From the NCBI GenBank assembly GCA_028023455.1, contig JAQFVV010000006.1, forward strand, positions 1,426,001-1,490,000: DNA of 64,000 bases. Reading direction: 5' to 3'. The notes beneath the pieces are model-generated. The model had not been told where the DNA came from and made no database searches. It saw only the letters and a program-made list of their open reading frames with translations. Shown one piece after another: positions 27,465 to 55,995 of the stretch; position 1 is the first letter of the stretch; every line of letters starts with the position of its first letter. The DNA comes from Epiperipatus broadwayi (lineage: Eukaryota; Animalia; Onychophora). The position numbers were made by a program, and so were the translations under genes.

Positions 27465-27872
27465 CATCACATGATCACCATTTCTTATGCTTGCTCAAGC
27501 TGTTAAACAGGCAAAACTCTTTATACAGTAGTGCCACTCAGTGCGAACCAGAGTAATCAATGAATGCAAGAAGGTTTGTGCATAAAATGCCTATTTGGTG
27601 CCTACTCATTCAATATCCCCTGACTATTTCTAGCTTGTGGCTTTCATCAGTGAGGAGCCTTGGATCTGATAGCCATGCACCTAGGTCTTAGGATCAGTGC
27701 TTTCATATCCAAGGCTCCTCACTGATGAAAGCCACAAGCTAGAAACTAGTCTGGGGATATTGGATGAGTAGGCACTAGATAGGTATTTTATGCACCAACT
27801 TTCTTGCATCCATTGATTACTCTGGCTTGTATTGAGTAGCACTACTGTATGGATAGTTTTGCCTGTTTTATC
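27465..27872. mobile_element. Family B tail-out inverted pair centred ~27690
   Basis: Minus arm 27465-~27690 (decayed HHR at 27616-27656) and plus arm ~27695-27872 (intact HHR at 27716-27757). Confidence 0.88.
27716..27757 (+). ncRNA. Minimal type I HHR (family B)
   Basis: TCCTCA-CTGATGA-A AGC cacaa GCT A-GAAA-C TA G-TC-TGGGGA. 6-bp stem I, 3-bp stem II, palindromic ACTAGT stem III, GUC triplet. Confidence 0.85.
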
Positions 27873-29380
27873 AGATAACTGACCTTCACCATTTTTTTTC
27901 TTTTTGAATTTATTTCTTTTGAATCAGTTGTCATTACAATCTGGTTTCAGCCATTTTATATGGTCTGCATCAAGAGGCTCATGAAAAACTGTATGCATAT
28001 CTATTTTTCGTTATATAATCCATTAAGTTAAATAATAAGTGGTTAATGGATAAAGAATGGATAGTTAATTAATTAATATATGTGGATATATATCCATTCA
28101 ATATATATAATAGAGTAATTTTGTAGTAGAATTGAGAAAAAAAATCACATAATAGATCGTGTCAGATATCCATTTGTTTATCTGTCTTCTCTCATGTATT
28201 GATATAGATGTCGCTATATGTGCTTTAAATCATGGAGACATATTGAAACGGGCAAAAAACATAATTTGCCGAAAAAGGATTTTTTATGATAATTTTATAA
28301 TTTGTAATCTTTGTTGCTTGTATATATGTATTTTTAAACATATTTGACTATTATATAATCTGTGAATGGTAATGTAACAAAAATGTATAATGTTTTTTAG
28401 TTATGAAAGCCTCGACAAAGGTCATAAGCTAGACAAAAGATTGTGACAATGATTTTTGATTCAAATAAAATAATATTTTAAAAGAAGAAATTGATGAATA
28501 TCTGTGGAGTTATTTAAATATATATATTGCAAAAAGTATATTCTTCATATCCAATGTGCAGAAAAATCAGACTAAATTAGCAAGTCATGTTTCATCAGGT
28601 AAACATCAAATCATCAGTTATAATAAAATATGAACATGGTTTTATACATCTAGTAGTGTTACATATATTCTTTTTTGGAAAAGATTCCAATTCACATGTT
28701 CATGGCAGAAATAATCGTTTGACTAATTTTATGAAATACATTTATTGTCTTAGTGCATTTGACGATTTTACGATAAGTTCCATGAATATTACCCCGAGAG
28801 ACAGCACCGAATATAAGGTTACTTTGAATTTTTTTAATGCTATTGAAATAAATAAGAGAAATCTTCCATTTTTTTCATACATAACTTAGTGCGAAACACA
28901 ATATATATAACGATAATACTTAAATCTATTAAAGTACAAAATTATATTTCACAAGAGTTTGTGGGCAATTGACAATTATTTTAGTGCTATTATTTAAAAC
29001 TGCATAGCCAACCTTTTGACACAACGAGTCTTTGTTAAAACTACACCGAAATTTGTTAAAGTGAATCTTTAAGTATGTATAAAGATTTCAATCTAGATTT
29101 GCAAAAATATTCTACATTGAAAGCCCATAAAAGCAGACTGTAATAATAATTAATTTTCCATAAATTCTTGTGGAATACAATTTTATATATATATAAACAA
29201 TGAAATTATAATTAATGCCATGTAAATTTACGATAAATTGTGAATCCGCAATTTTAATGGGTTATAATTATTTATGATATATTGTCAATCCACAATTTTG
29301 GTGGGTTATTTTAATTTCTAATGCTGTATTTATTTATTATATATACATATGAGTAGAATGCCATCTTAAAATGTTTGTAG

Positions 29381-29505
29381 TTTTGTGAAGCGGATAATAA
29401 ATTGAACATCTTGGTATCATTTCTCAAATCACGTTTGGATTTAAAACACATGATATTTTTCAATACGTGTGCCAGTGTGGATTATTTCTCGGATATTTTG
29501 AAAAG
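29381..29505 (+). CDS. DDX55: DDX55 coding exon (motif IV)
   Basis: Acceptor tttgtag and donor gtaaga. FCEADNKLNILVSFLKSRLDLKHMIFFNTCASVDYFSDILK+AG matches DDX55 VCKADEKFNQLVHFL...KHLVFFSTCACVEYY. Phase 0 start fits the previous exon. It is absent from the ORF track. Confidence 0.93.
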
Positions 29506-29789
29506 GTAAGATTTTTCTTTCTTTGTAAGCATGAGCTAGGAAATATTACGTGACTGCCAGAATTATGATTTTTTTCACAGGAATCTTTCGAGTTCCATTT
29601 TTTTTTTTTTTAAAAAATTAAGATTATGGAATCAATTAATAATATCACAAAGTAGTGAAAATTATTTCTGATTCTTAATTTGAAATTGATACATTCTCCA
29701 ATCAGGGACCATGGATTGAATGAATGATTGAGTTGAGAAATTAAGACATTCTTTGACATAAATGAACATATTAAGGTTTCATGTGTGAG

Positions 29790-30135
29790 GGATCAGATTG
29801 ACTTAAGATCAACATGGGTACGATAACAATATTGATATCAACAAGGGCTTTGAGCATTCCAGTCTTGGATTTTCAATGAAATGGATGGCTGAAGGGTTGG
29901 AGAGTGGAGAAGATTGAAGCTTATCCATTAAAGTTTAAAGATTTGCTATTTTAATATAAACTGAGCATTGATTGTATATATGTGTGGGAGATGGTGATCT
30001 GGACCAACTGATGAGCGCTGGTTCAACGTGAAATACATGTATTGGAGATCATTTGGTCATATGTATCAATTGTATAAGATAGATTGGATAGATGTAGGGT
30101 GCTTGAAAGTTCAAGTCCTTTATAATTACATTAAG
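29790..30135 (+). mobile_element. Family A retrozyme-like element
   Basis: Homologous to 35041-35330, 56338-57066 and 58123-58270. Contains the HHR at 30004-30045. Confidence 0.8.
30004..30045 (+). ncRNA. Minimal type I HHR (family A)
   Basis: CCAA-CTGATGA-GCGCTG gtt CAACGT-GAAA-TACATG-TA-TTGG. Stem I is CCAA/TTGG and the triplet is GUA. Confidence 0.7.
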
Positions 30136-30170
30136 TTACATATAGACAATATACATATATTTAAATATAT

Positions 30171-32517
30171 AATTAAAATTACCCCAAATCCAAAATTCAA
30201 CCAGACCAGCAAAAAATAATATTAAAACACAACCAAAAGTTTCACTGCTACAAGCAGACTTCTCAAGTGTAAAGAACAACAAAAACTACACAATATATAT
30301 AATATTAAACATTACCCACAAATCCATTCACTTCCCATCCACCCTTAATATTAAAAGAACTCTTAAATAAGTTAATTGCTTCAGAATAATAAATTTTCAA
30401 TAATAAAGATTCTTTAATTCTTCTTTTGATTTCATTTCTCTCAAAGAAGACAACCTTAGCTTCATCAAAATTAATAGTGTGGCCTGTATCTTTTTCATGA
30501 CATACAAAGCAGAACTAAGATATCTATTTTTAACTCTACTTTTATGAACCTTTATTCTTTCATTTAAACTCAAACTACTCTGACCTATGTAAACCTTCTT
30601 ACAAATAAACAAGGAATAAAATATACTATACCAGGAATAGTCTTTCTATCAAAAACTTCTTTTGTATTATTTAATAAATTATTCAATGTAACACCCCTTT
30701 TCCAAGCAATTTTCTTATTTCCAAACAATTTACTATTTCTACACACAATTTTATAAGAAGACAATTTAAATGGCAAAGAAATAAAATCATATTTTTTCTC
30801 TATCCTTTACATCCTTAACAGTATTACTATTAAATAAAATACTTTTAACAAATTTATCAGAGTAACCAACCCTCAGGTAATCTTTATAAAATTGACCTTT
30901 CTGAAACAAAGCTACCCCACTAGAATTATTTAATTTATTATTCCTATGACAATAATTCCTTAAAGCAGCTACTTTATGAGATACAGACTGATAGCTATCA
31001 TGTTTAATTAGAGATCTTAATTCTTTACTTTTAACTAAATGACTGCACAATAAACAATTAGTCTCTACATTTCTAATCACCAAAAGATCTAATAATTTTA
31101 ACTTACCAAAATCTAACCCCCCTCCTAACATAAATTTTATAGAAGGATCAAAACAATTAAACCCATTTACAAATTCCTTCAATTTATCATTCTCAATTAC
31201 AAATAAACAATCATCAACATAACTGACAAATAACTTTACATATAAACAATTCTTTTTAATAATAATTTCCTCTTCCATATAATTAATATAAACTGAACAT
31301 ACTAAAGGAGAAATAATATAACCTATTATCCACCCTTCCTTAATTTTATAAAAATTACCATTATAAGTAAAATACATAGAATCTTCCAATAATAAAAGCA
31401 AATCTTTAATTACCTTAATTTTATTTTTTGTTAAAGAACTTTTTTAATCAATACAGACATAAGAACATCAATACTGCTTAACCTATTAACAGACTGATAC
31501 ATATTTTCAATATCTAAACTGCCAAATACCCAATTACTTTCCATTTTAAAATTATTAATCTTATCAAAAGCCTCAAAAGAAGAAGAAACTGTGTAATGAC
31601 CAAAATCAACAAATTGTTTTAAAAAATTATTCAAGAATCTAGAAATACCCTCTACAACACTACCTGTAAAATCAAAAATAAATCTTAAAGGAAAACCATC
31701 TTTATGAGTCTTAATATTCACAAACATCTTAGCTGATGTAAAATCATTTGGATAACATTTTAAATAATCTACACTATTAAAATTTTTTAAATTAACCCAT
31801 TTTCTTCATAATATTTATCAACTTTCTTTTAATCAAATTACCTGGATCTTTATCTAAAAACATATATTTACCATTATTTAATTCTTTATCCATTTGCTCT
31901 TTGAATTCATCTCCTTTCGTAATGACAAACCTACCAGCTTTGTCTTCATGAGAAATGATCACATCATTAGCAATTAACCTATTCTTAAGATGTCTAACCT
32001 CAGCAGGATTAACCACAAATTTTTCTTTCCTTTTTAAACTTTTATTCAAAATCGATTGAACACCAACTTTCTGCTCATCACTCAAATTACTAGATTCAAT
32101 AGACAAAATTGTATCAAAAACTATATTTTTTGAATGAAATGGAACAAAATTAGGGCCTTTACCAAGAATATCTAATTCTCTATCATTTAACTTAATATCA
32201 GAAAGATTAACAACTCTATTATCAGAAGCATTACTCTCATACCCCTTATCACTACAATAAGTTTTATTAACTTTCCCAAACAACCACTTTAATTTTCTTT
32301 CATATTTCTTACAATAGAAATTTGACCTATTCTGTCTAAATTGCCTCATGAAAAAATTCAAAATTGAATAATTAAAATCTTGCCTCCTGTCTAAATAATA
32401 TCTATTTCTTTTATATACATAAATAAATTTGTAAAACTTTACAAAATTTTCTTTCAAAAAACTATTCAAAATATATGTTTGTAACTTAAAAACCAAATTC
32501 CTATTTTGAAGCAACCT
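30171..32517 (-). mobile_element. Penelope-like retroelement, left arm (RT + GIY-YIG; frameshifted, 5'-truncated)
   Basis: ORF pieces 31792-32514, 31431-31727 (KTHKDGFPLRFIF, SLDIENMY), 30787-31401 (ISPLVCSVYINYME, YVDDCL) and 30397-30776 (GIVYFIPC..YIGQS..ERIKVH). Confidence 0.93.
30227..30270 (-). ncRNA. Variant type I HHR (U3-A8) in PLE 3' end, left arm
   Basis: Minus strand reads ACAC-TTGAGAA-GTCTGCTTGTAGCAGT-GAAA-CT ttt GG-TT-GTGT. Confidence 0.7.
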
Positions 32518-32527
32518 TTTTTTTTTT

Positions 32528-34922
32528 AGGATAGAGTCTTTAAGATGGCAGATTTATTTTCATAAAAAATGTAGGGAATTTAGTGTTTTTCCTAGGTGTT
32601 GTGTTATTAATTTTAGTAGAAATAAAAAATTGCTTCAAAATAGGAATTTGGTTTTTAAGTTACAAACATATATTTTGAATAGTTTTTTGAAAGAAAATTT
32701 TATAAAGTTTTACAAATTTATTTATGTATATAAAAGAAATAGATATTATTTAGACAGGAGGCAAGATTTTAATTATTCAATTTTGAATTTTTTCATGAGG
32801 CAATTTAGACAGAATAGGTCAAATTTCTATTGTAAGAAATATGAAAGAAAATTAAAGTGGTTGTTTGGGAAAGTTAATAAAATTTATTGTAGTGATAAGG
32901 GGTATGAGAGTAATGCTTCTGATAATAGAGTTGTTAATCTTTCTGATATTAAGTTAAATGATAGAGGATTAGATATTCTTGGTAAAGGCCCTAATTTTGT
33001 TCCATTTCATTAAAAGAACATAGTTTTTGATACAATTTCGTCTATTGAATCTTGTAATTTGAGTGATGAGCAAAAAGTTGGTATTCAATCGATTTTGAAT
33101 AAAAGTTTAAAAAGGAAAGAAAAATTTGTGGTTAATCCTGCTGAGGTTAGACATCTTAAGAGTAGGTTAATTGCTAATGATGTGATCATTTCTCGTGAAG
33201 ACAAAGCTGTTAGGTTTGTCATTATGAAAGGAGATGAATTCAAAGAGAAAATGGATAAAGAATTAAATAATGGTAAATATATGTTTTTAGATAAAGATCC
33301 AGGTAATTTGATTAAAAGAAAGTTGATAGATATTATGAAGAAAATGGGTTAATTTAAAAAATTTTAATAGTGCAGATTATTTAAAATGTTATCCAAATGA
33401 TTTCATATCAGCTAAGATGTTTGTGAATATTAAGACTCATAAAGATGGTTTTCCTTTAAGATTTATTTTTGATTTAGATTCTTGAATAATTTTTTAAAAC
33501 AATTTGTTGATTTTGGTCATTACACAGTTTCTCCTTCTTTTGAGGCTTTTGATAAGATTAATAATTTTAAAATGGAAAGTAATTGGGTATTTGACAGTTT
33601 AGATATTGAAAATATGTATCAGTCTGTTAATAGGTTAAGCAGTATTGATGTTCTTATGTCTGTATTGATTAAAAAAAGTTCTTTAACAAAAAATAAAATT
33701 AAGGTAATTAAAGATTTGCTTTTATTATTGGAAGATTCTATGTATTTTACTTATAAAGGTAATTTTTATAAGATTAAGGAAGGTTGGATAATAGGTTATA
33801 TTATTTCTCCTTTAGTATGTTCACTTTATATTAATTATATGGAAGAGGAAATTATTATTAAAAAGAATTGTTTATATATAAAGTTATTTGTCAGATATGT
33901 TGATGATTGTTTATTTGTAGTTGAGAATGATAAATTGAAGGAATTTGTAAATGAGTTAAATTGTTTTGATCCTTCTATAAAATTTGTGTTAGAAGGAGGG
34001 GGGTTAGATTTTGGTAAGTTAAAATTTTTAGATCTTTTGGTGATTAGAAATGTAGAGACTAATTGTTTACTATACAGTCATTTTGTTAAAAGTAGAGAAT
34101 TAAGATCTATAATTAAACCTGATAGCTATCAGTCTGTATCTCATAAAGTAGCTGCTTTAAGGACTTATTGTCATAGGAATAATAAATTAAATAATTCTAG
34201 TGGGGTAGCTTTGTTTCAGAAAGTTCAATTTTATAAAGATTACCTGAGGGTTGGTTACTCTGATAAATTTGTTAAAAGTATTTTATTTAATAGTAATATT
34301 TGTAAGGATGTAAAGGATAGAGAAAAAATATGATTTTATTTCTTTGCCATTTAAATTGTCTTCTTATAAAATTGTATGTAGAAATAGTAAATTGTTTGGA
34401 AATAAGAAAAATGCTTGGAAAAGGGGTGTTACATTGAATAATTTATTAAATAATACAAAAGAAATTTTTGGTAGAAAGACTATTCCCGGTGTAGTATATT
34501 TTATCCCTTGTTTATTTTGTAAGAAGGGCTACATAGGTCAGAGTAGTTTGAGTTTAAATGAAAGAATAAAGGTTCATAAAAGTAGAGTTAAAAATAGATA
34601 TCTTAGTTCTGCTTTGTATGTCCATGAAAAAGATACAGGTCACACTATTGATTTTGATGAAGCTAAGGTTGTCTTCTTTGAGAGAAATGAAATCAAAAGA
34701 AGAATTAAAGAGTCTTTATTATTGAAAATTTATTATTCTGAAGCAATTAACTTATTTAAGAGTTCTTTTAATATTAAGGGTGGATGGGAAGTGAATGGAT
34801 TTGTGGGTAATGTTTAATATTATATATATTGTGTAGTTTTTGTAGTTCTTTACACTTGAGAAGTCTGCTTGTAGCAGTGAAACCTTTGGTTGTGTTTTAA
34901 TATTTTTTTTTGCTGGTCTGGT
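32528..34922 (+). mobile_element. Penelope-like retroelement, right arm (RT + GIY-YIG; frameshifted, 5'-truncated)
   Basis: The frame is open from ~32528 (RIESLRWQIYFHKKC...) into ORF 32630. RT lies at 33482-34333 (SLDIENMY, ISPLVCSLY, RYVDDCL, KFLDLLV). GIY-YIG lies at 34344-34817 (GVVYFIPCLFCKKGYIGQS...ERIKVH...HEKDTGHTIDF...KESLLL...AIN). It is an inverted copy of 30171-32517. Confidence 0.95.
34852..34895 (+). ncRNA. Variant type I HHR (U3-A8) in PLE 3' end, right arm
   Basis: ACAC-TTGAGAA-G T CTGCT tgt AGCAG T-GAAA-CC ttt GG-TT-GTGT. Stem I is ACAC/GTGT, stem III is ACC/GGT, the triplet is GUU, and cleavage is predicted after 34891. It lies 35 nt after the GIY-YIG stop codon. Confidence 0.75.
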
Positions 34923-34954
34923 CATAAATATAAAAGCCAAGAAAAGTTAAAATT

Positions 34955-35700
34955 AAGGTGACACTTTAGTCTTCATTAAAATCATTATGATTATTCATGA
35001 ATGTTAAATATTTGATAGTACATTTTATTTAATTAATTAATATATAGGGGATTTGAACCCAGACTTTCATACGACCCTCAACCATCCATGCTATCTCTTA
35101 CTGCTGATACACTTGATCACACATATGTTGAAAAGATAAATAATCACCAATATTCTTATTTCATGCTAAACCAGAACTCGTCAGTTGGTCCAGATTATCA
35201 TCTCCACACATATATACAATCAATGCTCAGCTTATATTAAGATAGTCAATCTTCAAACTTCAATGGACAGACTTCAAACACTCCACCCATAACTCTTCAG
35301 CCATCCATTTCATTGAAAATCTGATGATGGAACGCGCAAAGCCTGAAAGTCGGAGTTCAAACCCCTATATATTACATATAGAAGTGCAGGTATGAAAATG
35401 CCTGTACTGTAGAAAAAATTCATATTTTAATTAATTAAGTAAATTTAACTTTGAAAGATAAGTTGTTTGAAATCTCTAGAGTATTTTTATATCTATTATA
35501 TATTCTTTATTAGCCATCTTTTGCCATTAAATAAATTTGATGTTAATACAGAAAATGGAGTTATTATTTAGGATCTTTGTTTAAAATGATTCTTTAAATC
35601 TTTGAAAGTTAAATTTATATAATTAGTTAAATAAAAAGCACTGTCAAATATTTAGCAGTCCTAAATCATCATAAGTAATATAGACTAAAATTTCACCTTG
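34955..35700. mobile_element. Old MITE-like foldback (~80-bp diverged TIRs) hosting a family A insertion
   Basis: 34955-35035 (AAGGTGACACTTTAGTC...AAATATTTGATAGTAC...) is an imperfect reverse complement of 35620-35700 (...GCACTGTCAAATATTT...GACTAAAATTTCACCTT). Confidence 0.55.
35041..35425 (-). mobile_element. Family A element (minus body + short inverted plus 3' tail) with ~13-bp TSD
   Basis: The HHR lies at 35146-35189 (minus: ACCAA-CTGACGA-...-GAAA-TAAGAA-TA-TTGGT). An inverted 3' tail starts at ~35342. Flanks TTTAATTAATTAA lie at ~35028-35040 and ~35426-35438. Confidence 0.8.
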
Positions 35701-35804
35701 TACTAATAGTAAATACCAAATGAAGTTTTAATAATAGCTTAACTAGTTTTAATCTAAAAAGAAAAGAAAAAAAAATGGAAACAGATAATAAATTTAACTT
35801 GTGA

Positions 35805-36250
35805 TAAAGATCCTGCCAAATAGAATAGTGGTGGCTATGGTTGTTAAAGAGCCAAAGACACCAAAATGTATGGGTGCTGAACTGAGCTCAGACCCATATG
35901 ACTATATAAGCTATTGAGCTTAGATTCAAAATATTATTGTGTCTTCAATTTCATTCTCATAGTTTTGTAGTTAAGTAAAGTTGAAAGGTGGGTGCTGGAG
36001 GGTTGCATTAGATCCTAAGGTCTAGGTGCAGTGCTCTCAGATCCAAAGCTCCTCACTGACGAAGGCCACAAGCCAGAAACTAGTCTGGGGATATTGGATG
36101 AGTAGGCACTAAATAGGGATTTTATGCACAAGCCTTCTGGCATCTATTGATTATTCTGGTTGGCACAGGGTGGCACTACTGGATGGAGAGTTTTGCCTTG
36201 TTTATTAACAATTATGTGCTAGTATAAGAGATGGTGATCATGTGATGTGA
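35805..36250 (+). mobile_element. Family B full monomer
   Basis: One complete permuted unit ending in GATGGTGATCATGTGATGTGAT, with the HHR at 36050-36091. Confidence 0.85.
36050..36091 (+). ncRNA. Minimal type I HHR (family B, G-C stem II variant)
   Basis: TCCTCA-CTGACGA-A GGC cacaa GCC A-GAAA-C TA G-TC-TGGGGA. Stem II GGC/GCC is a double compensatory change relative to AGC/GCT in other copies. Cleavage is predicted after C36085. Confidence 0.87.
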
Positions 36251-38233
36251 TAAATATATTATTACTTTTGTTGTTTCCTAGCAGAAAAAATTGATAATAA
36301 TAATAAACAAATAATAAAATGAAAATTGTTTTTTTTTTTTAAATAGAAAGATGTTTCGATAATAATTTTACTTTATTAAAGTTAAATTAAGGGAGTGAAA
36401 TAATTTGCTTTAAAAATGTTTCGTCTTGCTTTCTTATAAAAGATAATGATATCTAATAAAACTTTTTTGAGGTTTGATTCGCAAATAGAACTGATTATTT
36501 TGAAAAATTTTAATTTAATTAATAAATAAAGATGAGCAGGATAGGTATTTGCATGAAATAGTAGAATAAAGAAAAATAGAGAATCGGCAAGTATTGATCA
36601 TTGTGAAAGAAGAAATCTACTACCTGAGTCACGTGGTAGTGAAGATCTGGCTAGAAAATGAAAGCTAAAATTAAGTCCAGGAAGAAATAACAGAGTGTGT
36701 AATAAAAATAGAATTTGACCTGAAAGAGAAAAAAAATTCCCATCAAAGCTAGAGTTGGCTATACAGAGTTCAAATAATATGTATGAAAATATTCAAGAAA
36801 ATGATAATAAGGATGAGCCCTCAGACATCAATGCAAACATATAATTTAAAAAATAAGCAATTTTTTCAGAGTATATGGGTGGAGCTTCAACAGGTTGGAG
36901 AGATATTTTAATCTGAAACTTAGTTATCTGAAAAGAGTAAAATAGGGACAGCATGTACCCATCTCCAAAGTACATCCCAAACATGGCAGGATTTGTTGTT
37001 TGAGAAGGAATCAAACATTTGTATTGCCCAAGAGAGGGTTTCATCCCATTTCAGGTAATCAAGCTGAGAGTGTTAACAGCTGATCCTTTTATCCAAAAGT
37101 CAGATTAAAATCAGGCATTGAACAAATGCTTATAAGCACTGTTGGAAAACCATGGAGCAGGTGGATGAACTATTAAATGTGTTTAAGAGCAATAAATAAT
37201 GATGGCACAAGAGAATGGATTTAAATCCCAACAGAATTGTTAAATGGGAATCTGAAGCCCAGATCGATACAGTTGAAAATAGAAATGCTACAGCATTGTA
37301 TGAGGAAAGATCTGAAGGCTGACTGTCTTGGGGAAATAAAAAAAGAAAAGAAGGTCAATAAACAATCCAACCAGTCTGGATAGAACAAGAATTATTTATT
37401 GGACTGGAAGTGGAACTTTAAATTGACAACAAAGAATTACCACCACTGATCACATTATAAATGTCAATTGCTTTCAGTAGGAGGTAGTCCCATCTCACCA
37501 ACAGTTCATATTGTAAATCTACGGGAATGAGAACCAAGCACTTTGCTGCACACGCTATTTGTTCACGCCGTTTGGACTCCGGCAATTCAGGGTTCATGCT
37601 TGATTTTCCTCTTGGTGTTTTTAATTAGTCGGTTCCATTTCTATAGTATCAAGAAATATTTGTAATTAGCAAATATTTCTTGGCATTTATCAAATGCAAT
37701 TTTCTTATCACATATTCCGTAAATATTTTCTATTGTTGAATTCTACACAAATTTAATTATTAATTAAACTTTTTTACTTTCTATCTGATTTAATTATACA
37801 ATGTTCTTTTTTTTCTTAAATTACTTTACCCAAACAGTTCATTAATTTTACTCTTATCAGTTATTGATCGAAAAAGATATATTCCTCTAATATATTTTCC
37901 TTACTTTTTCTGGAGCACAAAAAAACTTATAATTATTGAATTACAATGTATATACTTTTAGAAACATGACAGTTACATAACAAATATGCATTTAATTTGA
38001 TATTACAGAGGGCTAGTAATATGTAGCTATTTTTTATTTTAATTAATGTTTGTGCCGTCATTTTCATATAGAGTGGTTTAATGCTATATTAGAATGATAG
38101 ATTTGAAATAAAGGTTCCTAGATTAAAACTTAACCTGTCTCATCCAAGGCTGAAAAATTACACCCTCTTCTAAGCATCTAAGCATTCTGTTATTTTTTTT
38201 TTTTATATTAAAATTCTCTCTATATAAAGAATT

Positions 38234-38390
38234 GTCAAACATCACATGATCACTATTCTTTATGCTTATACAACTATTTTTCACAGAGGCAAAACTCTCC
38301 ATACAGTAGCGCCACTCAACTTTCCTGCATCCATTGATTACTCTGGCTTGCACTGAGTGACGCTACTGTATGGAGAGTTTTGGCTCTGTG
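38234..38390. mobile_element. Family B 3'-end mini tail-out insertion with perfect 12-bp TSD
   Basis: TSD ATATAAAGAATT at 38222-38233 and 38391-38402. The minus arm starts at (GTCA)AACATCACATGATCAC and the plus arm ends at GGCTCTGTG. Confidence 0.88.
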
Positions 38391-39917
38391 ATATAAAGAA
38401 TTATATTCAGATTTATTGACACCATAATACAATTCAACTATTAAGCCACTTACTTATAAATGCTAAGCAATGACTTGAAAAAGATGTCTCAGCCTCTCTC
38501 TAGATTTTCGTAGATAAATAAAAAAGCATATTTAAACATCACGAACAAGTGTGGAATTTAAATTAACTGTGATATTGTCAAAACTTCATATTTAAAGGCA
38601 TAGTAGACAATTATTTCTTTTAGCGCCTTTTTAAACACACTCTTGCTTAATAATTTAGTATATATGTGAAGTATTCACATAACACACAGCATTTTACAAT
38701 TATACTGTTTAATGTGAAGCTTTAATAATAGTCAATTTAAATATCACATTTGTTTATGGTTGTTTAAATATATATTGTCTTTTACACCCTGACATAGTAA
38801 CTAAAGAGAAGTGGAATTATCTTTTTCTACTTGTTGCTAAGCAATTATAAACGAATGGTTTAATGGTTGAATTGTTAGTAGTTTTGATTTGTGGGCAGAT
38901 TCTTTAGTATCACACCCATTAGTCTGGCTATGATACCAATTTTGTTATGATTTTGCTATATATTTTTAGAATCTTATAGAATGTCCTTATGGAATATCAA
39001 TAAGGGGTGCAGGACATATTTTCATACAATAAATTGGTTAAAAGAATAGTTCCGTATGCAAATAATTTTGTCACAGTAGTTCTGTATAATGAAGTGTCAT
39101 ATTTTTTTAAATTGTTAAATACATCAGCAACACGTCGCACTCCATGTTGTAAGTCAGTGTTGTCAAATATAGCAACATGTCGGATTCCATGTTGGAACTC
39201 GACATTCAAATTCTTGATTTTTAAAAATTATCCAAAATATAATATAGTTTTAAAATTGTGATTATAGAAATTTGATGACCATTGAGGATATAATGTTATA
39301 TTTTGATCGTGGGCTCTATCATCTAATAACATTAGCCTTATCTACTGGCACAGAATCTAAATATTTTACTAATTTTTAAAGTGCACGGCTTTGTTTTCAA
39401 CTTTAATCCCAAATTATTATTTTTTTTTACAAATCCTCAGACTCTGTCTTTTTGACTGAAAATTTTAAGCATATTGATCTAGGAAGGGCACATTTGTAAT
39501 ATATCATATTTTTTCAAAGCCCATCCTTCTAAACACTCAAGTTATGGATCGTAATTCACCCTACTATTTTGGAATAGTTTCTTAGAGACTAGAGGCTGCT
39601 CCTTCACAATTAATTTTGTTTGTTAACAGATTTAGATATTCTACTTAATAATACTCTTGAGGAAATAATATTCTGTTTCTAGTTAATAATGGAAAAGTTA
39701 GTTATTTGATACATCATGTAATATTATGGTACAAAATGTGGCAGATGTTAGTAAGTAACTAAGAATCACATGATCACCATTCTTTATGCTTACCCAAGCT
39801 GATAATGCAGAGGCAAAACTCTCCATACAGTAGAGCCACTCGGTGCAAGCCAGAGTAATCAATGGATGCAGAAAAGTTTGTGCATAAAATGACTATCTAG
39901 TGCCTTCTCATCTAATA

Positions 39918-39959
39918 TCCTCAGACTAGTTTCTAGCTTGTGGCTTTCATCAGTGAGGA
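39918..39959 (-). ncRNA. Minimal type I HHR (family B, perfect stem I)
   Basis: Minus strand reads TCCTCA-CTGATGA-A AGC cacaa GCT A-GAAA-CTAG-TC-TGAGGA. The U.G wobble of other copies is replaced by U-A. Confidence 0.87.
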
Positions 39960-40099
39960 GCCTTGGATCTGAGAGCACTGATTAGGATCTAAAGCAACTC
40001 TCCAGCAGCAACCTTTTACTTTTTAAATTAACTATACAGTTTTGACTCCAAAATGAAACAATAATGTTTTCAATTCAAGCTGATTTACTTGTATAGGCA

Positions 40100-40139
40100 C
40101 CTCACTGATGAAAGCCACAAGCTAGAAACTAGTCTGGGA
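40100..40139 (+). ncRNA. Minimal type I HHR (family B)
   Basis: CCTCA-CTGATGA-AAGCCACAAGCTA-GAAA-CTAG-TC-TGGGA. Stem I is 4 bp, and the motif sits right at the inversion junction. Confidence 0.75.
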
Positions 40140-41344
40140 TATTAGATGAGTAGGGATTAGATAGGGATTTTACATACAAACCTTTCTGCATACATTGATT
40201 ACTCTGGCTTGCACTTGGCACTACTGTTTGGAAAGTTTTGTCTCTGTGTTATCAGCTTGTGTAAGCATAAAGAATGGTGATCATGTGATGTTCAGTGGTT
40301 TAATACCAATCCTTCCCAATAGGATTATGGTGAATATGGTACCAAAGACATGAAAATGTATAGATGTTGAACTGAGTCCAGATCTATATGACTATACAAA
40401 TAAATGAGCTTGAATTGAAAACATTATTGTTTTCATTTTGGACTCGATGCTGTATAGTTAACTAAAAAAGTAAAAGGTGGTTGCTGGAGGGTTGCATTAG
40501 ATTCTAAGATCTAGGTGCAGTGCTCTCAGATCCAAGGAGCCACAAGCTAAGAACTAGTCTAGGGATATTGGATGAATAGCCACTAAATAGGGATTTTATG
40601 CACCAACCTTTCTGCATCCATTGATTATTCTGGCTTACACTGAGTGGCACTACTGTATGGAGAGTTTTGCCTCTGTGTAATTAAGTATCAGTAGGAATGC
40701 AATTTATTATTCTAATCTCTAATAAAGAATCATCCTACAAACGTCTTAAAAAGTGTTTAGATCCTTTTTGACAAATGGTCTGTGTATATCATGGTTTACG
40801 TTAAAGAGGTGTTTAATTTCTGTAACACATGAATATGCTCATTGTATATACTATTCGAGCTTCATTGGTAGATTGGTCCTACTGTGAGCTTTAGGATTGC
40901 ATTAAAGAATTTTTAAAGGTGATGCTTTGAAAAAATTAGTTCATTAGGTTGAGTAAATGAACTTACATTCCTAAGAAGTATGAGTAGTTGAATATAGCAA
41001 ACAAATCTCACAGGATGCTAACTCTAGCATGATGTCTATAATGAAAATGTATTTATTATGTTAGATTGTTTTTTTTTTGGTGTGTCTTTCAGATGATTTG
41101 TATACATTTTCTAATAACATATGTCCCTTAGAATGGATTATTTAATATAGAATTATATAAATATTAAAATGGTAATAAATAAAATATGCATTTATATCCA
41201 CATGTAAATTGTCCTTAGCTATAATTTATCGTTTTCATATAGAAATTTTATTCACCATTTTCAACTATTATTAAAGTAAAAGTATTTATCAAAATTTTAA
41301 AATTTAGTTCATGATTTAGTCAGTAGAGGACAGTATATTATATT

Positions 41345-41920: not shown

Positions 41921-42296
41921 ATTGAACTTGTAGTAAAGCCCATGTTTTTTCCATGCGCCCACACATTGATTACCATTTGATATACTATTTTAAATTATTA
42001 ATTGACCGTAGTAAATACTTTAAAATGTTGCATTTATATTTTTGTCATTGTGATTTTTTATGTCTGTTTTAGACTCTAATTAAAATAACGAAGTTTAAAT
42101 AAATTATTTTCATCTCTTCTTTAATTATCTAGTTTTTTTATTTTTAATATGACTTTGTTTATCGGACTAGCCTCAATTTCTTTTTTTGTATTTACTGACT
42201 AACTATTCATCTCACTTTAATTACTTGTGTTGAGATATATATCATTGCATATTATTTTCATTTATAATATAACCCCAATACTTACATACATACATT

Positions 42297-44847: not shown

Positions 44848-45286
44848 TAAATAGATTTATATTATCACATCCAACAAGTTGAAGATCATATTCTCATGCA
44901 ATATCTTCAAATGAAACTTTTCTAATGCTTTATATTGAGTTGATATCTAAGTCACTAATCTCTCTATATAGCTAATGTATGTGCCATAGTCATTTCCCTA
45001 TAATGAAATACCATTGTTTTAACTTGTTAAAATCAGTAACGAAAATTAGAATCTGTGGCGCACCTCGACATACTAAGTTCACCTTTTTATTTATAAAACT
45101 ATTTAATAAACAATATATATATCTTTGTTAGCATACAATAAATCACAACCAGTAGCATATTGTTATGATTCGATGTACTTCTTGATTGGTAAAAATATTT
45201 TTTCGAATAACATGTTTTTTTGATAGAAGTAAGCTTTTATTATTTATGTATAATTGTGATTATTTATTAAGTGCATAGAAAGTAAG

Positions 45287-45870
45287 TAAATACTTTTAGA
45301 GAAAGGCTTTAACTGTTATCATATTTACTTTGAATGCTTATAATAGTCAACCGATATCTTTTTTTGACTATAGAGGGACCTCTCAAACTTTGACACAAGC
45401 TAGCGACTTTATAAAGATAAGAACGGCCGTCTTATCTTTAACCTAAATTACCACTTAAAAAATGAAGAGACTAACAGCTTCACGCGCCCAAGTCGAGATG
45501 CTTCAAGATTGCTCTTTATAAGTGATAGTTTAGGTTAATGATAAGACGGCTATTTTTATCTTTATGAAATTGTTATCTTGTGTCGAGGTTTAAGAGGTCC
45601 CTCTATAGTCAAAGAAAGACATCCTTTGGCTATTATAAACATTCAAGGAGCACATGATAAAGGTTAAAGTCTTTCTCTAAAAGTATTTATGTATAAATCA
45701 CTGAATGCATACCTTTATTTGCTTTTCTTAGTAAAAGATTAAAACTGAAACATAATTGTTCAATAATCTTTTACTAAGAAAAGCAAATAAAGGTATGCAT
45801 TCAGTGATTTATACATAAATACTTTTAAAGAAAGGCTTTAACCTTGATCATGTGATCCTTGAATGTTTAT
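45287..45870. repeat. Chained double palindrome (unit in -,+,- orientation)
   Basis: 45287-45455 is inverse to 45525-45689 (diverged), and 45635-45741 is inverse to 45764-45870 (near perfect). Confidence 0.8.
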
Positions 45871-46126
45871 TATTTTAAAATGACTTAGCAAATAATGACT
45901 ACCATTTTGTTATATCTTAGCAGGGTCAGTCAAGTTAGGGATACAACAGAGATGGGGTCAGGGCAAAATCATAAACATTTAAATAATTTTCTAAATTTTT
46001 TATTTTACAAAAATTTTTTTTTAGAAAAATTAAAAATGAATAATAGTGTACTCTTTTAATATAATAGTAAATAAAATCAAATCATACATCATGTGTTTTA
46101 ACTTGGTAAGCTTGGATTTTTTAAAA

Positions 46127-46540
46127 TAATGAGCGTGCTAATAGCTCTAACCAAGTTTTATCGATAAATGCGCAAGAGAAAGCATTCAAAATCTCTCTCT
46201 AGAAACATCCCTCACCCCAAACCGGTTTCAAGCTGTTCACTATCCTCAGTGAGATACTAGGATATTTCAGTTACTAGATTCAAAATACCAATTCAAAGTC
46301 AACACTTATCTGATATTTGACTATTAAGTAGAAAATCTGAAATTTTCAGACATCTATGTGTCTTAAAATCCAAATATCTATCTTAAATAGCTATATGAGT
46401 GTGAAAACTTCAGTCATACCTTATGTTAATAATAACCTTAACAATATAACATAGCTTACGACTTCAAATCAAAACTATAATAGTAAATAAAATAAAGTTA
46501 TACATCACGTGACTTAACTAAGAGCTTGCTAATTAATATA
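46127..46540 (-). mobile_element. Family D full monomer
   Basis: Reverse-complement homologue of 18836-19333 (shared CAGATTTTCTACT, GATATCCTAGTATCTCACTGA, GAGCTATTA.CA.GCTC), ending near the same 3' position. Confidence 0.78.
46213..46256 (-). ncRNA. Minimal type I HHR (family D, ACCGGT loop)
   Basis: Minus strand reads TATCTCA-CTGAGGA-T AGT gaaca GCT T-GAAA-C CG G-TT-TGGGGTG. 7-bp stem I with wobbles, palindromic ACCGGT stem III, GUU triplet. Confidence 0.75.
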
Positions 46541-46611
46541 ATATACACACATGTATATCTTTAGTACATATTAATCTACATATAAATCTTTCAGTAAAAG
46601 ACAATTGACTC

Positions 46612-46651
46612 CCACAATGCATTTCGTGCTGAAATAGCACTCATCAGTTGG
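46612..46651 (-). ncRNA. Minimal type I HHR (family A-related, canonical G10.1-C11.1)
   Basis: Minus strand reads GCCAA-CTGATGA-GTGCT atttc AGCAC-GAAA-T GC A-TT-GTGG. Perfect 5-bp stem II, palindromic ATGCAT stem III, AUU triplet, stem I with one mismatch. An inverted 3' half (GAAATGCATCTTGAGG) follows at ~46693. Confidence 0.7.
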
Positions 46652-49600: not shown

Positions 49601-51779
49601 ATAATTGGACATATGCTAGTAATGCTATCATAATAATATAAAATCATTGAATTTAACTATTAAAGTAAAGCCTTAAATGGTTTAACAAATACGTAATGAT
49701 ATGCTAAAATAATGACCCACATAAGCTAAAGTCATTGATCATACATTAAACTATCATTAATGAAGCGTGCATTGCTCCCCCTTCTTGAATCAATATTTTA
49801 ACATATTAAACAAACACTAAAATTCACGCACTTAAAAGTGCAAATTACAAAATAGATTTAATTCGCCAGCCTTTTGGCGATGATGCTCAATAAGAAATTT
49901 ATAAAACTAACGGACCCTAATATCCACCCCAGATTGCAAAAGTATTTATACATTTTGTATAAATTTACGATAAAACATTTATTTAAAAAAAAGGCAGGTA
50001 TTCATTTAAAGTACAAATCCAATCTTACGAGATATTTAAAATAAATAACAAGAACCCATTAATTTCCCCCTCCCCTTTTTATTCCACAGTGGGATATAGA
50101 AGTTCATAAGAATAGATTTGATACAAACAACATTAAATAAAAACATAAAAATATTATTAAAATTAAATTATAACCGCACTAAATTATAAAAATAATAAGC
50201 GTGAGTTGGATGACAGATTAGTTTTGATAGTAGAGAATTGATACAAAAGATTAACAGACTCACAGATTAGCGAGTTTTGAAAAAAAATTAAACAAAGAAA
50301 ACATTATTTTACAAATTAAATTACAAATAAGAATTGGCTAATGCGATTATATTATCTTTGGGCTGGTTACCTCAGGATTCTATGAAGTATTGACAAATCT
50401 TCTGTGGCAGGCTGCATTCTTTGATGGTATGGTCACTCTTGGGTGGAAGGAGCTACATCTTGGCACGAGTCGGGCTGAAGACGGAGGGGAAGGCGGCTTA
50501 GGCCCCTCAAAATTCAACAGACGTGAAGTCGTCTAGAAAGATTGACCAAACTCTGACACAATAGATTTTTAGCTCTATTTATGTCAGTTTTTAGCTCCTC
50601 AGAGAATGTTTTATTTAATTAGATTTCCTGATTCTAATGGATCCTTAATTTACAAGAGTCTTCTCTATTGTTAGTAAAGATGCAGTCATGAGATAACTGT
50701 CCCCAATCAATTCAAACCAATTTCCTGTTTGGAAATGGATTTGATAAAAAATGTTAATAGCTAACTAAAATCCATTAGCTTTGTTTTAGATTTTACTTTT
50801 CTTAACTTTAATTTACAAATTCTTTTTAAAATCATGAAACAAACTTCCCACCCCTTTAATTATTTTTAGACAGTCAAGGACTGCACCTTCCATCTTGAAT
50901 TTTTATGATAAAAAAATAATTACAATATTAAAATAAAAGTAAAAAAAAATACAATTTTAAAAGACACAAAATTATTTAGTATTTTAAATTATATATATAA
51001 GCTCCTGTAATATACGTATATATCTGAGTTGCATCTATAAAAGTTAATATTTAAAATAATTAAAGATTTTTAGTTCAGATTTGTATTTGTGAATCTCATA
51101 GACGCTTCTCAGAAATACACGTATAGTTTATATACATTTTACAAAAAAAAAAAAGCATAATAACACGTGGGCTGTGGTAGAACCATGAAACTCTATCTTG
51201 AACTAAGGTCGACTGTTTCAATATCAATGCTGTGACATACTTTGCCCTCAAAAGCACTAAGCTTCAATAAGCATACATTCATTATCAGTGCTGTGAATAC
51301 GAGGACATACTTCACCCTTGAAACCACTAAACTTCAATAAGTACACATTTGTTAATAGCTTTTTTTAAGATAGCGTTTAAGCGCAGATACTTATAAGTCA
51401 AAACAGAAATGTACATAAAGTGATAGCCCATGTCCTAACATAAACTGACAAGACACAACTCATAAACATGTGCTAATTCAAGATATCCCTACTCAGGATT
51501 TAACCTGTGATGCCAAAAATGGACGTGATTAATGATGGAGAGGTGGGGAGGGACTAGTGACTAATAGTCCATGACAAGGGGAAAATCATTATATGATAGT
51601 ATGCATATTTTGCCACATTTGTTGATAAAAATTGAAAGTACGAAATGTGTACAAAATGGCCAATTGGATAAAAGTAGAATGTACGAAAATAGAGGGTCAC
51701 CTGTATTTGTCAGGTGCAAAGAAATGGAAACTTTCAAAATTAAAAAAAGTTTTAAAAAATGTGTAAGGAAAGTCTAAAA

Positions 51780-53900
51780 CAGTGGATGGAAGAAAAGTTA
51801 GAAACAAAAATTAATGTAATTCCAGAATAATCAAGTTATAGTAGCTGATATTATTCTTGAAATGAAAAGTGAAAACAAAGAAATTGAAATTGACACAGAA
51901 AATATGGTCGAAGGTAATAAATAATGAATTATATTTTTGAACATAGGACAATTTCCCCAAAAAATGTACAGATAGTTTAGAATTATTGTTGGAGGCCCAG
52001 CACAATGGCCTAAACCTATATCAGATATTAGAATAAAGTGTTTTAAATGTGGACCAAAATAGATAAAAGAATATAATTTTCCAAAAAAAAAAGATCAACT
52101 TTTTTTCTAATGTTTATTATTATAAATAATAATTATGAAAAGCAACTCCGTAATAGGCTTTTATAGTTGATATCAGAAGTTAGTACTTATTGTTTTTGTT
52201 GCACGTTATTTGAATCTTTAAACGGAACATTAAAATTTGTCAACGGCTATAAAAGCTGGCAAAAATTGAGCAATGCTTACACATCACGTATTATATTCGG
52301 TGATAAGAATTAATTCAACGTCTCAATTTAAACCAAACTATTAACAATTTGGTGCAATCATTTATTAAAACTGAACAGTATTTGAAAGAAGTTTTCCACT
52401 GTATTGTAGACATTATATTATTTTTAAGTAAACGGAATTGGGCATTCGGGGATGATAATGAGACAATTGGAAGTTCATATATTGAAAATTTTCTTTGTTT
52501 GATTGAATTATTAAGCAAATATATTGTATTATTAAAACATATTAAAATAATTCATGTTAATAAACAAGCGAGTGGTCAATTATTTGCTATATCGTCTGTC
52601 GAAATAATGAAAAACAGTATAAAAAGTGTGAAGGATGCTAAATGCTATAATGCTGAATTGGAATGTGTACCAGATATAGCTCGTCGAACAAATGTTAATA
52701 TTGATTACAAAAGAAACTTAGAAATAAAAGAAACTTTTATTAGTTTTTTTGAAGCACAGGGTATAACCTGTTAAGGTATTATCAAGTTTATTATTAAATA
52801 TTTTAAAATCATCTCACATAGATATTATGGACTGAAAGGACAATCCTATAGCTTTAGTGCTAACATATAAGGACAATATGAGAGTAAAAGCAAGAATAAT
52901 AAATCTATATCAAAATATGCCATCTGTACCTTGTGTAGTTCATTATTTTAATTTACCGGTTTGTGATAAAAACAATATTAAAATCTTTAAATCCTACTAA
53001 ATTGGAAGTTCAAGATAGATTCAGTCAAAGCTTTATCCTTTCAAATGAAAAATTGTATCCGCCTTGAATGAACGTATTAACACATTAGTTGATTGTTCAG
53101 TTGTTTCATAAGCAAATAGAATGTTAGAGAACATTACAAAATTTCCATTTTCTATTTCACGTTTAATTTGGTATAAATTTTAAGTGCAATAATCAAAACA
53201 AACCTTGTTCTTCGGAATGAAGATGTTACATTAGAGTCCGCTTTTTCACTTATTAAATGAATACTAAATCTATTCCAAATCATAAGAAATGATGAATTTG
53301 AAAAATTATTAGAAGTGGTTAAAAAATTGTTCAAGGATTAGGTGGAAATGTGGAATTTCCTCTTTATTATAACTGTAAAAGAAAATGTTTTCGATGAAAT
53401 ATGCATTGATGAAATTTTTGATGACTTTGAGGAATTATAAGATTTTGTGGTTTTCTTCCTTGATAGATACTTTGGATTGCCAAATAGATGATAGATTTAT
53501 GTCAGTTCCAATAATTTTAGAAAATTATAAAATATTTCATTATTTGGCTGAAGAAAAATGCTCTCTTGAACTTCTAAAAGATTACATTTTGTGAAAAATC
53601 TTTAGTCATTTTTGATTAAGACAACGAATTTATGAATGAAGTCTCTTTTTTAAAAAAAAATAATAGAAGAAAAATCTTATTAAACTGTTCAACCTGCTTA
53701 ACTTTAGAATAGAAAATAGTTATAATGAAAATTTTCCCAATGTTTGCATTATACTAAGAATTGATTTAATATTTTAGGTCATGTAGAACACTCATTTAAT
53801 AAATTAAAATGAATCAAAATATACCTCAGTCACAAGAGAGATTTGGGATATTGAAAGTCCACGTTTGGAACTAATAAAAGTTTTACGAAATAAAAAAACA
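51780..53900 (+). pseudogene. Decayed hAT transposase (TTF-type zinc finger / DUF4371, ZMYM1-like)
   Basis: Fragments ...CGPK..KEYNFP...RNRLL...YCFCCTLF, and LSKRNWAFGDDNETIGSSYIENFLCLIELLSKY...VKDAKCY (ORF 52349-52774). Many stops and frameshifts. Confidence 0.7.
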
Positions 53901-55680
53901 ATAAAAACATTTCAGTTGCCGTATGTAGCAATAAAAACTATAAAAACGCAATTTTCAGTTGTAAAGTCATTAATTTATTATATATTGTAATATTGATTTG
54001 TCCCTTTGTTTATATTTGTAATTCAAATTTGCATATGTTTGTTTGTTTGCATAACTAAGCATTTTTTTTCTTTATAATCTAAAACTGAATGCACTTTCGG
54101 TGAAGTTCACCATAATCATCATTATATATTATAGTAAATATTAGTTCTACTTAATATGTCAGAGTAAGTTTGTAAGTTATTTTAATTTATTACAGTTTTA
54201 CATTATTTATGCTATATAATGTAATTCAAATTTTATTAATTCAACGTAAAATTTTTGCCAATAAAATTTTCATGGGGATCTCATAAAAGTACTTACACCT
54301 AGGCCTCCACGTATAGATGACTGAGCCCGTTTTTAGTGATTGAGGCTTGTTTGTTCTGTGAATGGCTTTATGTTCCTAGCATTACATATTTGATAAGTTG
54401 CAAAACTATTTGTACGTTCTTTAAAATTATTAGAATTTCATCTAAATTAATATTTGAAACCGTAAGCTGGTTTCATTAACACGATAAAAATTGTTGCTAA
54501 AAATAGTTTCACCCTTTTTGAATATCAATGCTTGATTTATTAGAAATATAAGAAACTGAAGATCAGTTAAAAATGATACATTTTTTATTTGACAAATTAG
54601 ATTGGCATTGATATAACAAAAGGGGGCGTTGTTTTCAAGCTCACATAAAAAAATGAGTCTTTAGGAATCTTGCTTGTGAATTTATCTTAATAATATATTC
54701 GGACTTGCTATTCTGTGATTGAATTTGTATAAAAAAGTATTAAATGAACATTCACCACCATATTAACTTTGCGTAGTGGATCAATTTTTTTTTTTTTGAT
54801 GATACATCTTTTTAGTACTTGACCCTCCCCCCCATTGCCAGAGTTTGTTTCATTCATTCATACCGTTATTATTTTATAATAACAAACCTCATCTACTGCA
54901 CGATAATCTGGAAAAGACGCAGTTTCATTATGTGGGTTTTTTATTTCCTCTATTGTGAGCACACCCATACATGTATATTATATAAAAGGAGGAGCCTGCA
55001 AACATATTCTTAAATATACTGTGGATACGTGGCATGTATAACTGTGAATCTCGCCAATTTCAAATTATTCCATTTTTACGACTTCACCTTGTGCTTTTTG
55101 AACTGCATCAATTCTTTTTTTTTATATTTTTAATAATACTTAATTTATGAACTTTTTGCACATTGATAGAGTAATGGAATCTGGAACTCATCCACAGATC
55201 ATAATGTAATTTCGCCATTTTCAGAACTGGGCTTCTTATTAACTAACCTGAGCCATTCTCTGGAACTCGGTTCATGGATTGCGACTTATTTTTGTCTTTT
55301 CTGATACTCAAACTTTTTTATGAAGTTATGATCAATAAACTATTTAATTATTTATGCTTTACATATTTAGTACAATAGTCAAGAGGCATTTACTGGAGCT
55401 CAAAGACAACCGATCATGGACCAATTCTGGTGTTCAAACATGAATTTCTGGATATAAATCATTTCAATATTATTATTTATATATATATAGTGAATATAAA
55501 CACCCCAATCTAAGTTAGAGTAATAGCCAAAAATAGAATATCTAATCTGACTTTATATAAAGATGTTTATAAATGAGTAATCAAATGCTGTTGAAAGGCA
55601 TATTGCATAAATATGTATAATGTCCATAAGGTAACCAACCTGTATTATTTTTACTGTTTAAAGCAGGAGTTAAACCCCTA

Positions 55681-55995
55681 AACATCACATGGTCACCATT
55701 CTTTATCCTAATGAGCTTGAATTGAAAAGTTGTGTTTTCATTTTGGACTCAAAGCCATATAGTCAGCTAATAAGGTAAAAGATGGCTGTAAGGAGGTTGC
55801 ATTAGATGCTATGTTCTAGGTGCAGTACTCTCATATCCAAGGTTCCTCACTGATGAAAGCCACTAGCTAGAAACTAGTCTGGGGATATTGGATGAGTAGG
55901 CATTAGATAGGAATTTTATGCACAAACCTTCTTGCATCCATTGATTACTCTGGCTTGAACTGAGTGGCACTACTGTATGGAGAGTTTAGCCTCTG
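55681..55995 (+). mobile_element. Family B element with a 27-bp inverted 3' tail and ~20-bp imperfect TSD
   Basis: AACATCACATGGTCACCATTCTTTAT (minus tail) is joined to the plus body ending GCCTCTG. Flanks are TAAAGCAGGAGTT(aaacc)CCTAAAC and TAAAGCAGGAGTTCCTAAAC. The left boundary overlaps the TSD by ~3 nt. Confidence 0.85.
55844..55885 (+). ncRNA. Minimal type I HHR (family B)
   Basis: TCCTCA-CTGATGA-A AGC cacta GCT A-GAAA-CTAG-TC-TGGGGA. The only change from the consensus is in loop II. Confidence 0.85.

Follow-up and report, generated by a model that had tools for sequence, protein, structure and literature searches.

Is the repeat that recurs through this stretch of Epiperipatus broadwayi DNA, here called family B, a mobile element, and is the hammerhead motif that it carries a working ribozyme? 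The stretch, referred to below as the window, comprises 64,000 nt of AT-rich eukaryotic DNA with 29% GC (contig JAQFVV010000006.1, positions 1,426,001 to 1,490,000, of assembly GCA_028023455.1). Family B is a real, very abundant, non-coding mobile repeat with a hammerhead motif. Taken together, the evidence makes it probable that family B is a retroelement of the animal retrozyme type, non-coding and non-autonomous, and that its ribozyme is functional. It was most likely copied into its present sites by the reverse transcriptase (RT) and the GIY-YIG endonuclease of a Penelope-like element.

The motif itself is well separated from chance. The pattern CTGANGA-N(6-30)-GAAACTAGTC was run on the window and on 100 shuffles, and exact matches were found at 27722(+), 36056(+), 39924(-), 40105(+) and 55850(+) and in none of the shuffled sequences; these are the five places at which the initial annotation had seen hammerheads. 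An independent type I hammerhead descriptor, which demanded the core, a helix II of at least 2 bp and a helix I of at least 4 bp, returned the same five motifs together with five of other families, compared with 0-1 per shuffled window. Family B copies were located by BLAST and by an nhmmer profile made from six copies. The nhmmer search yielded 19 pieces in the window; the piece at 19006-19266 belongs to the related family D, and the remainder form ten insertions, which span about 4.5 kb or about 7% of the window. Decayed hammerheads are present in seven further family B copies, against a first count of about six.

The best single copy, 35810-36248 (+), serves as the reference for numbering. 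It was found by both BLAST and nhmmer, represents a monomer minus only a linker of about 17 nt, has a GC content of 41% and is bracketed by the 9-nt duplication TGTGATAAA at 35800 and 36246. No open reading frame (ORF) of more than 42 aa overlaps this copy, in agreement with the earlier description of the repeat as non-coding. Family B has no long terminal repeat (LTR), primer binding site (PBS) or polypurine tract (PPT), and BLAST and nhmmer revealed no terminal direct repeats beyond the array structure. Two insertions contain partial head-to-tail arrays. The first, at 26225-27124 (-), holds about 2.2 monomers of the subfamily with a G-C pair in helix II, its hammerheads follow each other at 404-407 nt, and both of them are dead (26326-26373 and 26732-26784). 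The second is a 1.4-mer at 40095-40686 (+) with a spacing of 425-426 nt, the second hammerhead of which (40533-40571) has a 15-nt deletion. Tandem Repeats Finder missed both arrays because the copies are too diverged. Contigs of public sequencing runs rejoin 36248 to 35810 via a 17-21-nt linker, and the 439 nt of the reference copy plus this linker give a unit of about 456-460 nt. The overall unit length is thus about 405-460 nt, a range that includes the 425-440 nt of the initial annotation.

The public runs were available as assembler contigs, whose library type (RNA or DNA) was guessed; presence, abundance and head-to-tail joints can be read from such contigs, but not molecule ends, circles as opposed to arrays, or transcription, and head-to-tail joints are equally expected from genomic arrays. 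Family B is present in runs of the source organism and of several related organisms in tens of thousands of copies, with head-to-tail joints. The run depth amounts to 1e4-4e5 strictly inside 35810-36248 and is near 0 in the flanks. At least 5 organisms are represented by runs guessed to be RNA (again contigs of unverified library type) in which very high depth is confined to these boundaries, and one DNA run alone provided 75,116 contigs over the 90-nt hammerhead stretch.

In the reference copy, the intact hammerhead (36050-36091, 96.3 bits) belongs to the G-C helix II subfamily. Helix I pairs 36050-55 with 36086-91 (6 bp), the core consists of CUGACGA at 36056-62 and GAAA at 36076-79, and helix II is built from an A.A opposition (36063/36075) and 3 bp (36064-66 with 36072-74) under a 5-nt loop, CACAA. 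The palindrome ACUAGU lies at 36079-84 and contains helix III as one A-U and one C-G pair, so the 2-bp stem III described at the outset was read correctly; the predicted cut follows C36085 (C17). The motif had also been called minimal, which it is not: beyond an internal loop (36047-49 / 36092-93), helix I continues into a distal helix of 6 bp (36041-46 with 36094-99) that includes a compensated pair, and across copies the six distal pairs of this extended hammerhead (36041-36099, +) form in 91-92% of cases. Canonical animal type I hammerheads likewise have a 6-bp helix I, a 4-layer helix II and a short palindromic helix III (PMC4209133).

The other four copies were also found by both pattern and descriptor. 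Those at 27716-27757 (+, 99.1 bits), 39918-39959 (-) and 55844-55885 (+) are intact and have an A-U pair in helix II; in the second a U-A pair replaces the U.G of helix I, exactly the stem I change noted initially, and the third has the loop II CACUA. The core C3 U4 G5 A6 N7 G8 A9 ... G12 A13 A14 A15.1 ... U16.1 H17 is complete in all five, and each core base is the family-wide majority at 83-99% in the public runs. All five had been labelled near-intact; however, 40101-40138 (+) has a helix I of only 4 bp and no distal helix I because the arm is truncated at 40095. Loop II was thought to vary freely; however, it reads CACAA in four of the five intact copies, and genome-wide no loop position reaches 10% variation.

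Folding of monomer and dimer indicated that a helix III with a 2-nt loop is sterically impossible within a monomer. Hence, a helix of 6 bp could form only when two ACUAGU hexamers pair with each other, and double hammerheads that act via a short helix III are known (reviewed in PMC6765202). The + strand of the reference copy is predicted to fold with -139.3 kcal/mol (z -3.1, 0 of 100 shuffles as good), whereas the minus strand reaches z -1.8. These calculated energies fit a structured + strand RNA; in details, the minimum-energy fold is not the same as the consensus fold. As a separate observation, an alternative hairpin is possible in the A-U subfamily, where GCUAG, made up of the 3' strand of helix II and G12, is complementary to the CUAGU(C) of helix III and the cut site (27738-27752 and equivalents). 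This competing hairpin is weakened in the G-C subfamily, and the C/U difference at 11.2 may tune the competing fold as well.

Covariation supports these helices, within limits set by the number of sequences. In a MAFFT alignment of 11 copies, 91.5% of the cells are paired and two pairs show two-sided changes; the covariation score of 0.140 compares with 0.104 in shuffles (reached by 1 of 500) and with at most 0.057 for slid partners. A covariance model made from this alignment gave 14 matches in the window, among them a new, cross-family one at 46201-46268 (-, 30.6 bits, E 1.7e-5). The model-fitted alignment of these 14 sequences has 91% of its cells paired, three compensated pairs and a score of 0.153; shuffles gave 0.112 +/- 0.012, none of the 500 coming up to the observed value, and slid partners gave at most 0.062. 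The two-sided changes fall in distal helix I, proximal helix I and helix II, and they represent few events among 14 sequences. At the helix II pair, 10-11 copies have A-U, 3 have G-C and none is intermediate. Hence, the switch from AGC/GCT to GGC/GCC, to which the initial annotation had pointed as covariation between copies, does exist and is one of three compensated pairs, but it is a single split between two subfamilies and not a repeated event. The other two compensated events come from relatives of the family D type, in which one distal helix I pair has changed from A-U to U-A (or U.G). In sum, the covariation in the window is real but thin. A metagenome scan for the motif with helix II left free gave 0 matches and thus no independent copies for covariation.

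The two relatives deserve mention in their own right. The family D hammerhead at 19185-19252 (+), which matches the family B profile with E 4.5e-17 and served as outgroup for the covariation, has G.U at positions 10.1/11.1 and a GUU site. The family D-like hammerhead at 46201-46268 (-) has U.U at these positions and ACCGGU in place of ACUAGU as helix III. This double change from CUAG to CCGG keeps the palindrome and makes sense only for an intermolecular helix III. Among the window copies, the positions constrained by the hammerhead are 12.3% off consensus, compared with 19.6% elsewhere (Fisher p 1.7e-4). Divergence is lowest in the block 36050-36130, which extends about 40 nt past the motif.

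The DNA run adds the view across the genome. At N7, C and U are about equally frequent, and 17% of the depth has A at G8; both variants are CpG decay products of the CG formed by N7 and G8. A stands at position 10.2 in 9.7% of the depth and U at 11.2 in 16%, so that the G-C form of helix II is the majority genome-wide, though it is the minority in the window. Furthermore, T>C changes at 36057 and 36081 make up 0.4-0.5% of the DNA-run depth compared with 4-16% in three runs guessed to be RNA, one of them from the same organism. On the antisense strand both positions are A, in CAG and UAG contexts. The excess could be due to adenosine-to-inosine editing of antisense or hairpin transcripts, or to a bias in subfamily expression.

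How family B reached its sites can be read from the anatomy of the insertions. The pieces found by nhmmer stop within a common region on the 3' side (profile positions 373-413), whereas their 5' starts are spread from 2 to 344. Three insertions are enclosed by target site duplications (TSDs), which measure 9, 12 and 13 nt; where such an insertion has two arms, both lie inside the duplication. In six insertions, the arms are joined head-to-head with their tails outward. Of the arms of a two-armed insertion, one stops near 36203-36212 and the other near 36246-36265, which leaves a one-sided tail of about 40 nt; the family B tail carries the GATCATGTGATGT region.

Individual insertions illustrate these traits. 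At 27461-27875, a minus arm with long tail and decayed hammerhead (27461-27695; hammerhead 27610-27662) stands head-to-head with a plus arm with short tail and intact hammerhead (27682-27875). At 39765-40686, the inverted minus arm (39765-40100) has the long tail and faces the 1.4-mer plus array mentioned above, which has the short one. The insertion at 55672-55995 combines an inverted long-tail arm of just 28 nt (55672-55699) with a 5'-truncated plus copy (55700-55995), both enclosed by the 13-nt duplication TAAAGCAGGAGTT at 55659 and 55996. A short inverted pair of tail regions without hammerhead at 38234-38390 is enclosed by the 12-nt duplication ATATAAAGAATT at 38222 and 38391. The remaining cases were found by nhmmer and comprise an old inverted pair at 10404-10890 with both hammerheads decayed (10490-10543 on the minus, 10749-10799 on the plus strand), a symmetrical inverted pair of 3' regions without hammerhead at 19697-19845 (centre about 19775), a decayed inverted pair of 3' regions at 7055-7285 with the tail motif at 7273-7285, and an old plus-strand copy at 4824-5217 that starts in the tail of the preceding monomer and has a decayed hammerhead (5082-5134).

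Some further details concern these junctions and tails. The tail motif GATCAYGTGATRT also occurs at 9761-9773(+) and 15772-15784(-), where other similarity to family B is absent; these isolated motifs may be chance matches or very short tail-only insertions. The plus arms at 10749 and 40095, which belong to two independent inverted pairs, begin at the same point of the consensus (profile positions 243 and 242), which lies upstream of proximal helix I by 1-2 nt. This shared start may mark a preferred stop or template-switch point at the structured motif. The three short inverted pairs might all have been copies of a single foldback unit, but this was rejected, because their junctions lie at different consensus positions.

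Insertions of Penelope-like elements are known to be frequently 5'-truncated, to include partial tandems, to lie next to an inverted truncated copy and to carry a tail of 30-40 bp at one end only (PMC8557442), and the insertion anatomy of family B matches this description. The difference is that family B is an ORF-less element of about 440 nt, and that the RT/GIY-YIG element in the window is unrelated to it in nucleotide sequence. This element is a candidate helper. It consists of an RT ORF at 33482-34333 (+) and an ORF with a weak GIY-YIG match at 34344-34817 (+), while an RT fragment at 30787-31401 (-) lies in a head-to-head partner copy (30787-32514); the whole pair extends over 30787-34817. 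In an atlas search, the RT ORF hit only Penelope-type clusters, from rotifers, cnidarians and molluscs, and no protein homologues of the Penelope-like ORFs were found at E 1e-10 in a large database.

Family B can be placed among elements described before (PMC7229834; PMC4209133; PMC6765202; bioRxiv 10.64898/2026.07.22.740005). Metazoan retrozymes without LTRs have been proposed to be non-autonomous derivatives of Penelope-like elements (bioRxiv 10.64898/2026.07.22.740005). Family B shares with them (PMC7229834; bioRxiv 10.64898/2026.07.22.740005) the non-coding repeat of the 150-450 nt class with GC below 50%, one type I hammerhead per unit, head-to-tail copies, TSDs of more than 4 bp, the lack of LTR, PBS and PPT, and the co-occurrence with Penelope-like elements. 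The hammerheads are also alike, with a 6-bp helix I, a 4-layer helix II and a helix III of 1-2 bp with a small palindromic loop. In contrast to these retrozymes, family B lies at the top of their size range (405-460 nt), has A.A at 10.1/11.1, occurs in the window mostly as single, truncated or inverted insertions instead of long arrays, and has no match to a Penelope-like terminus when compared with the window element. On these grounds the retrozyme classification of the initial annotation is retained as far as structure and insertion are concerned; for family B, which is known here from its sequence, we infer self-cleavage, the need for a dimer, linear and circular RNAs and the identity of the helper.

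The hammerheads in the pseudo-LTRs of Penelope-like elements (PMC4209133; Lunse et al. 2017, cited in PMC6765202) are also close relatives. They are of type I, have a very short palindromic helix III that implies dimeric action, carry an unpaired nucleotide just 3' of A9 (in family B, A36063 so read), lie close together on opposite strands, reach high copy numbers and show compensatory changes among consensus families. Family B differs from them in an extra unpaired A before G12, which makes a 1x1 loop out of a bulge, in a helix II of 3 bp as opposed to 6-8 bp, in a long helix I with internal loop, as in canonical animal hammerheads, and in the lack of an ORF. More distant are newt satellite 2, pDo500 of Dolichopoda and Sm-alpha of Schistosoma (PMC2837043; PMC6765202), which are likewise repeats of a few hundred nt with a type I hammerhead (theirs being transcribed) and to which the double-hammerhead idea also applies. 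However, they are paired at 10.1/11.1, whereas family B is not, and family B is dispersed with TSDs and inverted arms instead of forming a long satellite. Hence, family B is a new family of a kind already described, namely animal retrozymes copied by Penelope-like retrotransposons, and the conserved A.A at the base of helix II is its one unusual trait.

The following life cycle would account for these features. Head-to-tail arrays would be transcribed on the + strand, each unit contributing a type I hammerhead with a helix III too short to close in one molecule. Therefore, the ACUAGU palindromes of two hammerheads would pair, and the double hammerhead so formed would cut after C17 (C36085). 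Target-primed copying would begin within the 3' tail, some 120-180 nt further downstream than the cut site, and priming at both nicked strands would give the head-to-head arms with tails outward. The insertions span the cut site uncut and their ends never coincide with it, and we therefore conclude that the template was an uncut multimer or a circle primed in the tail, not a linear monomer cut by the hammerhead.

The A.A mismatch needs closer consideration. As the initial annotation stated, positions 10.1/11.1 are A.A in all window copies with intact core, and this extends to the whole family: in four runs, A was found in 89-99.9% of the depth at 10.1 and in 87-99.5% at 11.1. A Watson-Crick pair, usually G-C in hammerheads, is thus absent at this place in the intact window copies and in most of the family. 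In other hammerhead families of the window, U.U is found at 46213 and G.U in the family A type. An unpaired nucleotide after A9 is typical of Penelope-type hammerheads (PMC4209133), and A36063 can be read as such a base, followed by a G-C pair in the majority subfamily. The second unpaired A, before G12, has not been described; a literature search for natural mismatches at 10.1/11.1 found nothing directly comparable. At 36063 itself, U replaces A in 11% of the DNA-run depth, which would give a U-A pair, and in 0.1% of a run guessed to be RNA from the same organism. We consider it quite unlikely that the mismatch at 10.1/11.1 (A.A, U.U or G.U) is a selected, lineage-wide variant of the hammerhead core and not decay. 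If it were, the loosened junction between helix II and the core could make cleavage strictly dependent on a dimer or on a protein partner, and could also move the balance of cleavage and ligation towards circles.

Among the rival explanations, the one that survives best accepts the mobile element and assumes a catalytically dead hammerhead. According to it, A.A abolishes cleavage, the element spread as uncut linear transcripts via the Penelope-like machinery, and the motif was kept by a block needed for the promoter, for RT recognition or for RNA stability. This explanation is possible but doubtful. In its favour, the G-C pair at 10.1/11.1 is highly conserved in hammerheads, including those of the Penelope type (PMC4209133), so its replacement by A.A makes the activity uncertain. 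Minizymes, in which helix II is replaced by a non-pairing linker, still cleave (PMC544870), and therefore the mismatch settles the activity neither way and need not be lethal. Rfam hammerhead models did not match anywhere in the window at gathering score, nor in 35950-36200 at E up to 10. The conserved block runs past the motif, as mentioned above, and the insertions span the cut site uncut; moreover, Penelope-type hammerheads cleave poorly in vitro, even as dimers (PMC4209133). Further observations weigh against the retrozyme reading itself. The minimum-energy structures of monomer and dimer do not reproduce the hammerhead fold, and in the A-U subfamily they prefer the GCUAG/CUAGU hairpin. 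RNAalifold, applied to ten copies of about 220 nt, arrived at a different consensus fold with an unfavourable covariation term (+1) in which the 3' half of the motif is buried. In the runs guessed to be RNA, 9-16% of the depth has ACCAGU through the change at 36081, which breaks the palindrome without compensation. Other C/G sites of the DNA run show 3-6% C>T or G>A, with the core the same as the non-core, and A/T sites less than 2%; the copies have therefore been neutral after insertion, and the conservation could reflect recent bursts from few masters. No locus of the window has two intact tandem hammerheads, so that none is a candidate source of monomers. Finally, family B and the Penelope-like element at 29700-35500, the only such element compared, share no sequence (best E 0.3).

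Against a dead hammerhead, the other 11 invariant core positions are kept both in the five window copies and in the consensus. Two-sided changes maintain the pairing in helix II and in helix I with its distal extension, and the palindrome is kept across related families. The mismatches U.U (46213) and G.U (family A type) also argue for tolerance at this place and not for decay. We thus prefer the retroelement of the retrozyme type with a functional ribozyme. Highly improbable is a satellite or segmental duplication, or a DNA foldback or miniature inverted-repeat transposable element (MITE)-like transposon with the arms as terminal inverted repeats and an incidental hammerhead-like motif, which would suit the head-to-tail arrays and the many, in part symmetrical, inverted pairs, but not the dispersed copies with variable 5' truncation and common 3' region, the varying TSD length (9-13 nt), the unequal arms with junctions at different consensus positions, the one-sided tail, or a motif far beyond chance; truncation, TSDs, arms and tail are traits of Penelope-like retrotransposition (PMC8557442), not of cut-and-paste.

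Two other features of the window can be added. Four hammerheads of another family at 21466-21511(-), 30004-30045(+), 35146-35189(-) and 58227-58270(-) have in common a helix II plus loop of 15 nt (type GYKCUGGWUYARYRU), G.U at 10.1/11.1 and a helix III segment of 8 nt that is not palindromic. An open frame at 4309-4479 (+) contains a DEAD-box helicase motif (ATPGRL...), which suggests an exon of a host helicase gene with the repeats sitting in its long introns.

In animals, retrozymes have recently come to be known as a source of abundant small circular RNAs, and how they are connected with Penelope-like elements is a matter of current work. Family B provides a clean case in this respect, as an ORF-less hammerhead repeat with the full insertion signature of Penelope, i.e. 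TSD-bracketed arms with tails outward and a one-sided tail. Therefore, the helper relationship is supported by anatomy and not by sequence similarity. Neither the insertion anatomy nor the A.A mismatch alters the known picture. The family-wide A.A, which is retained in several related organisms, offers a natural test of the tolerance of the hammerhead at a position that is usually treated as invariant.

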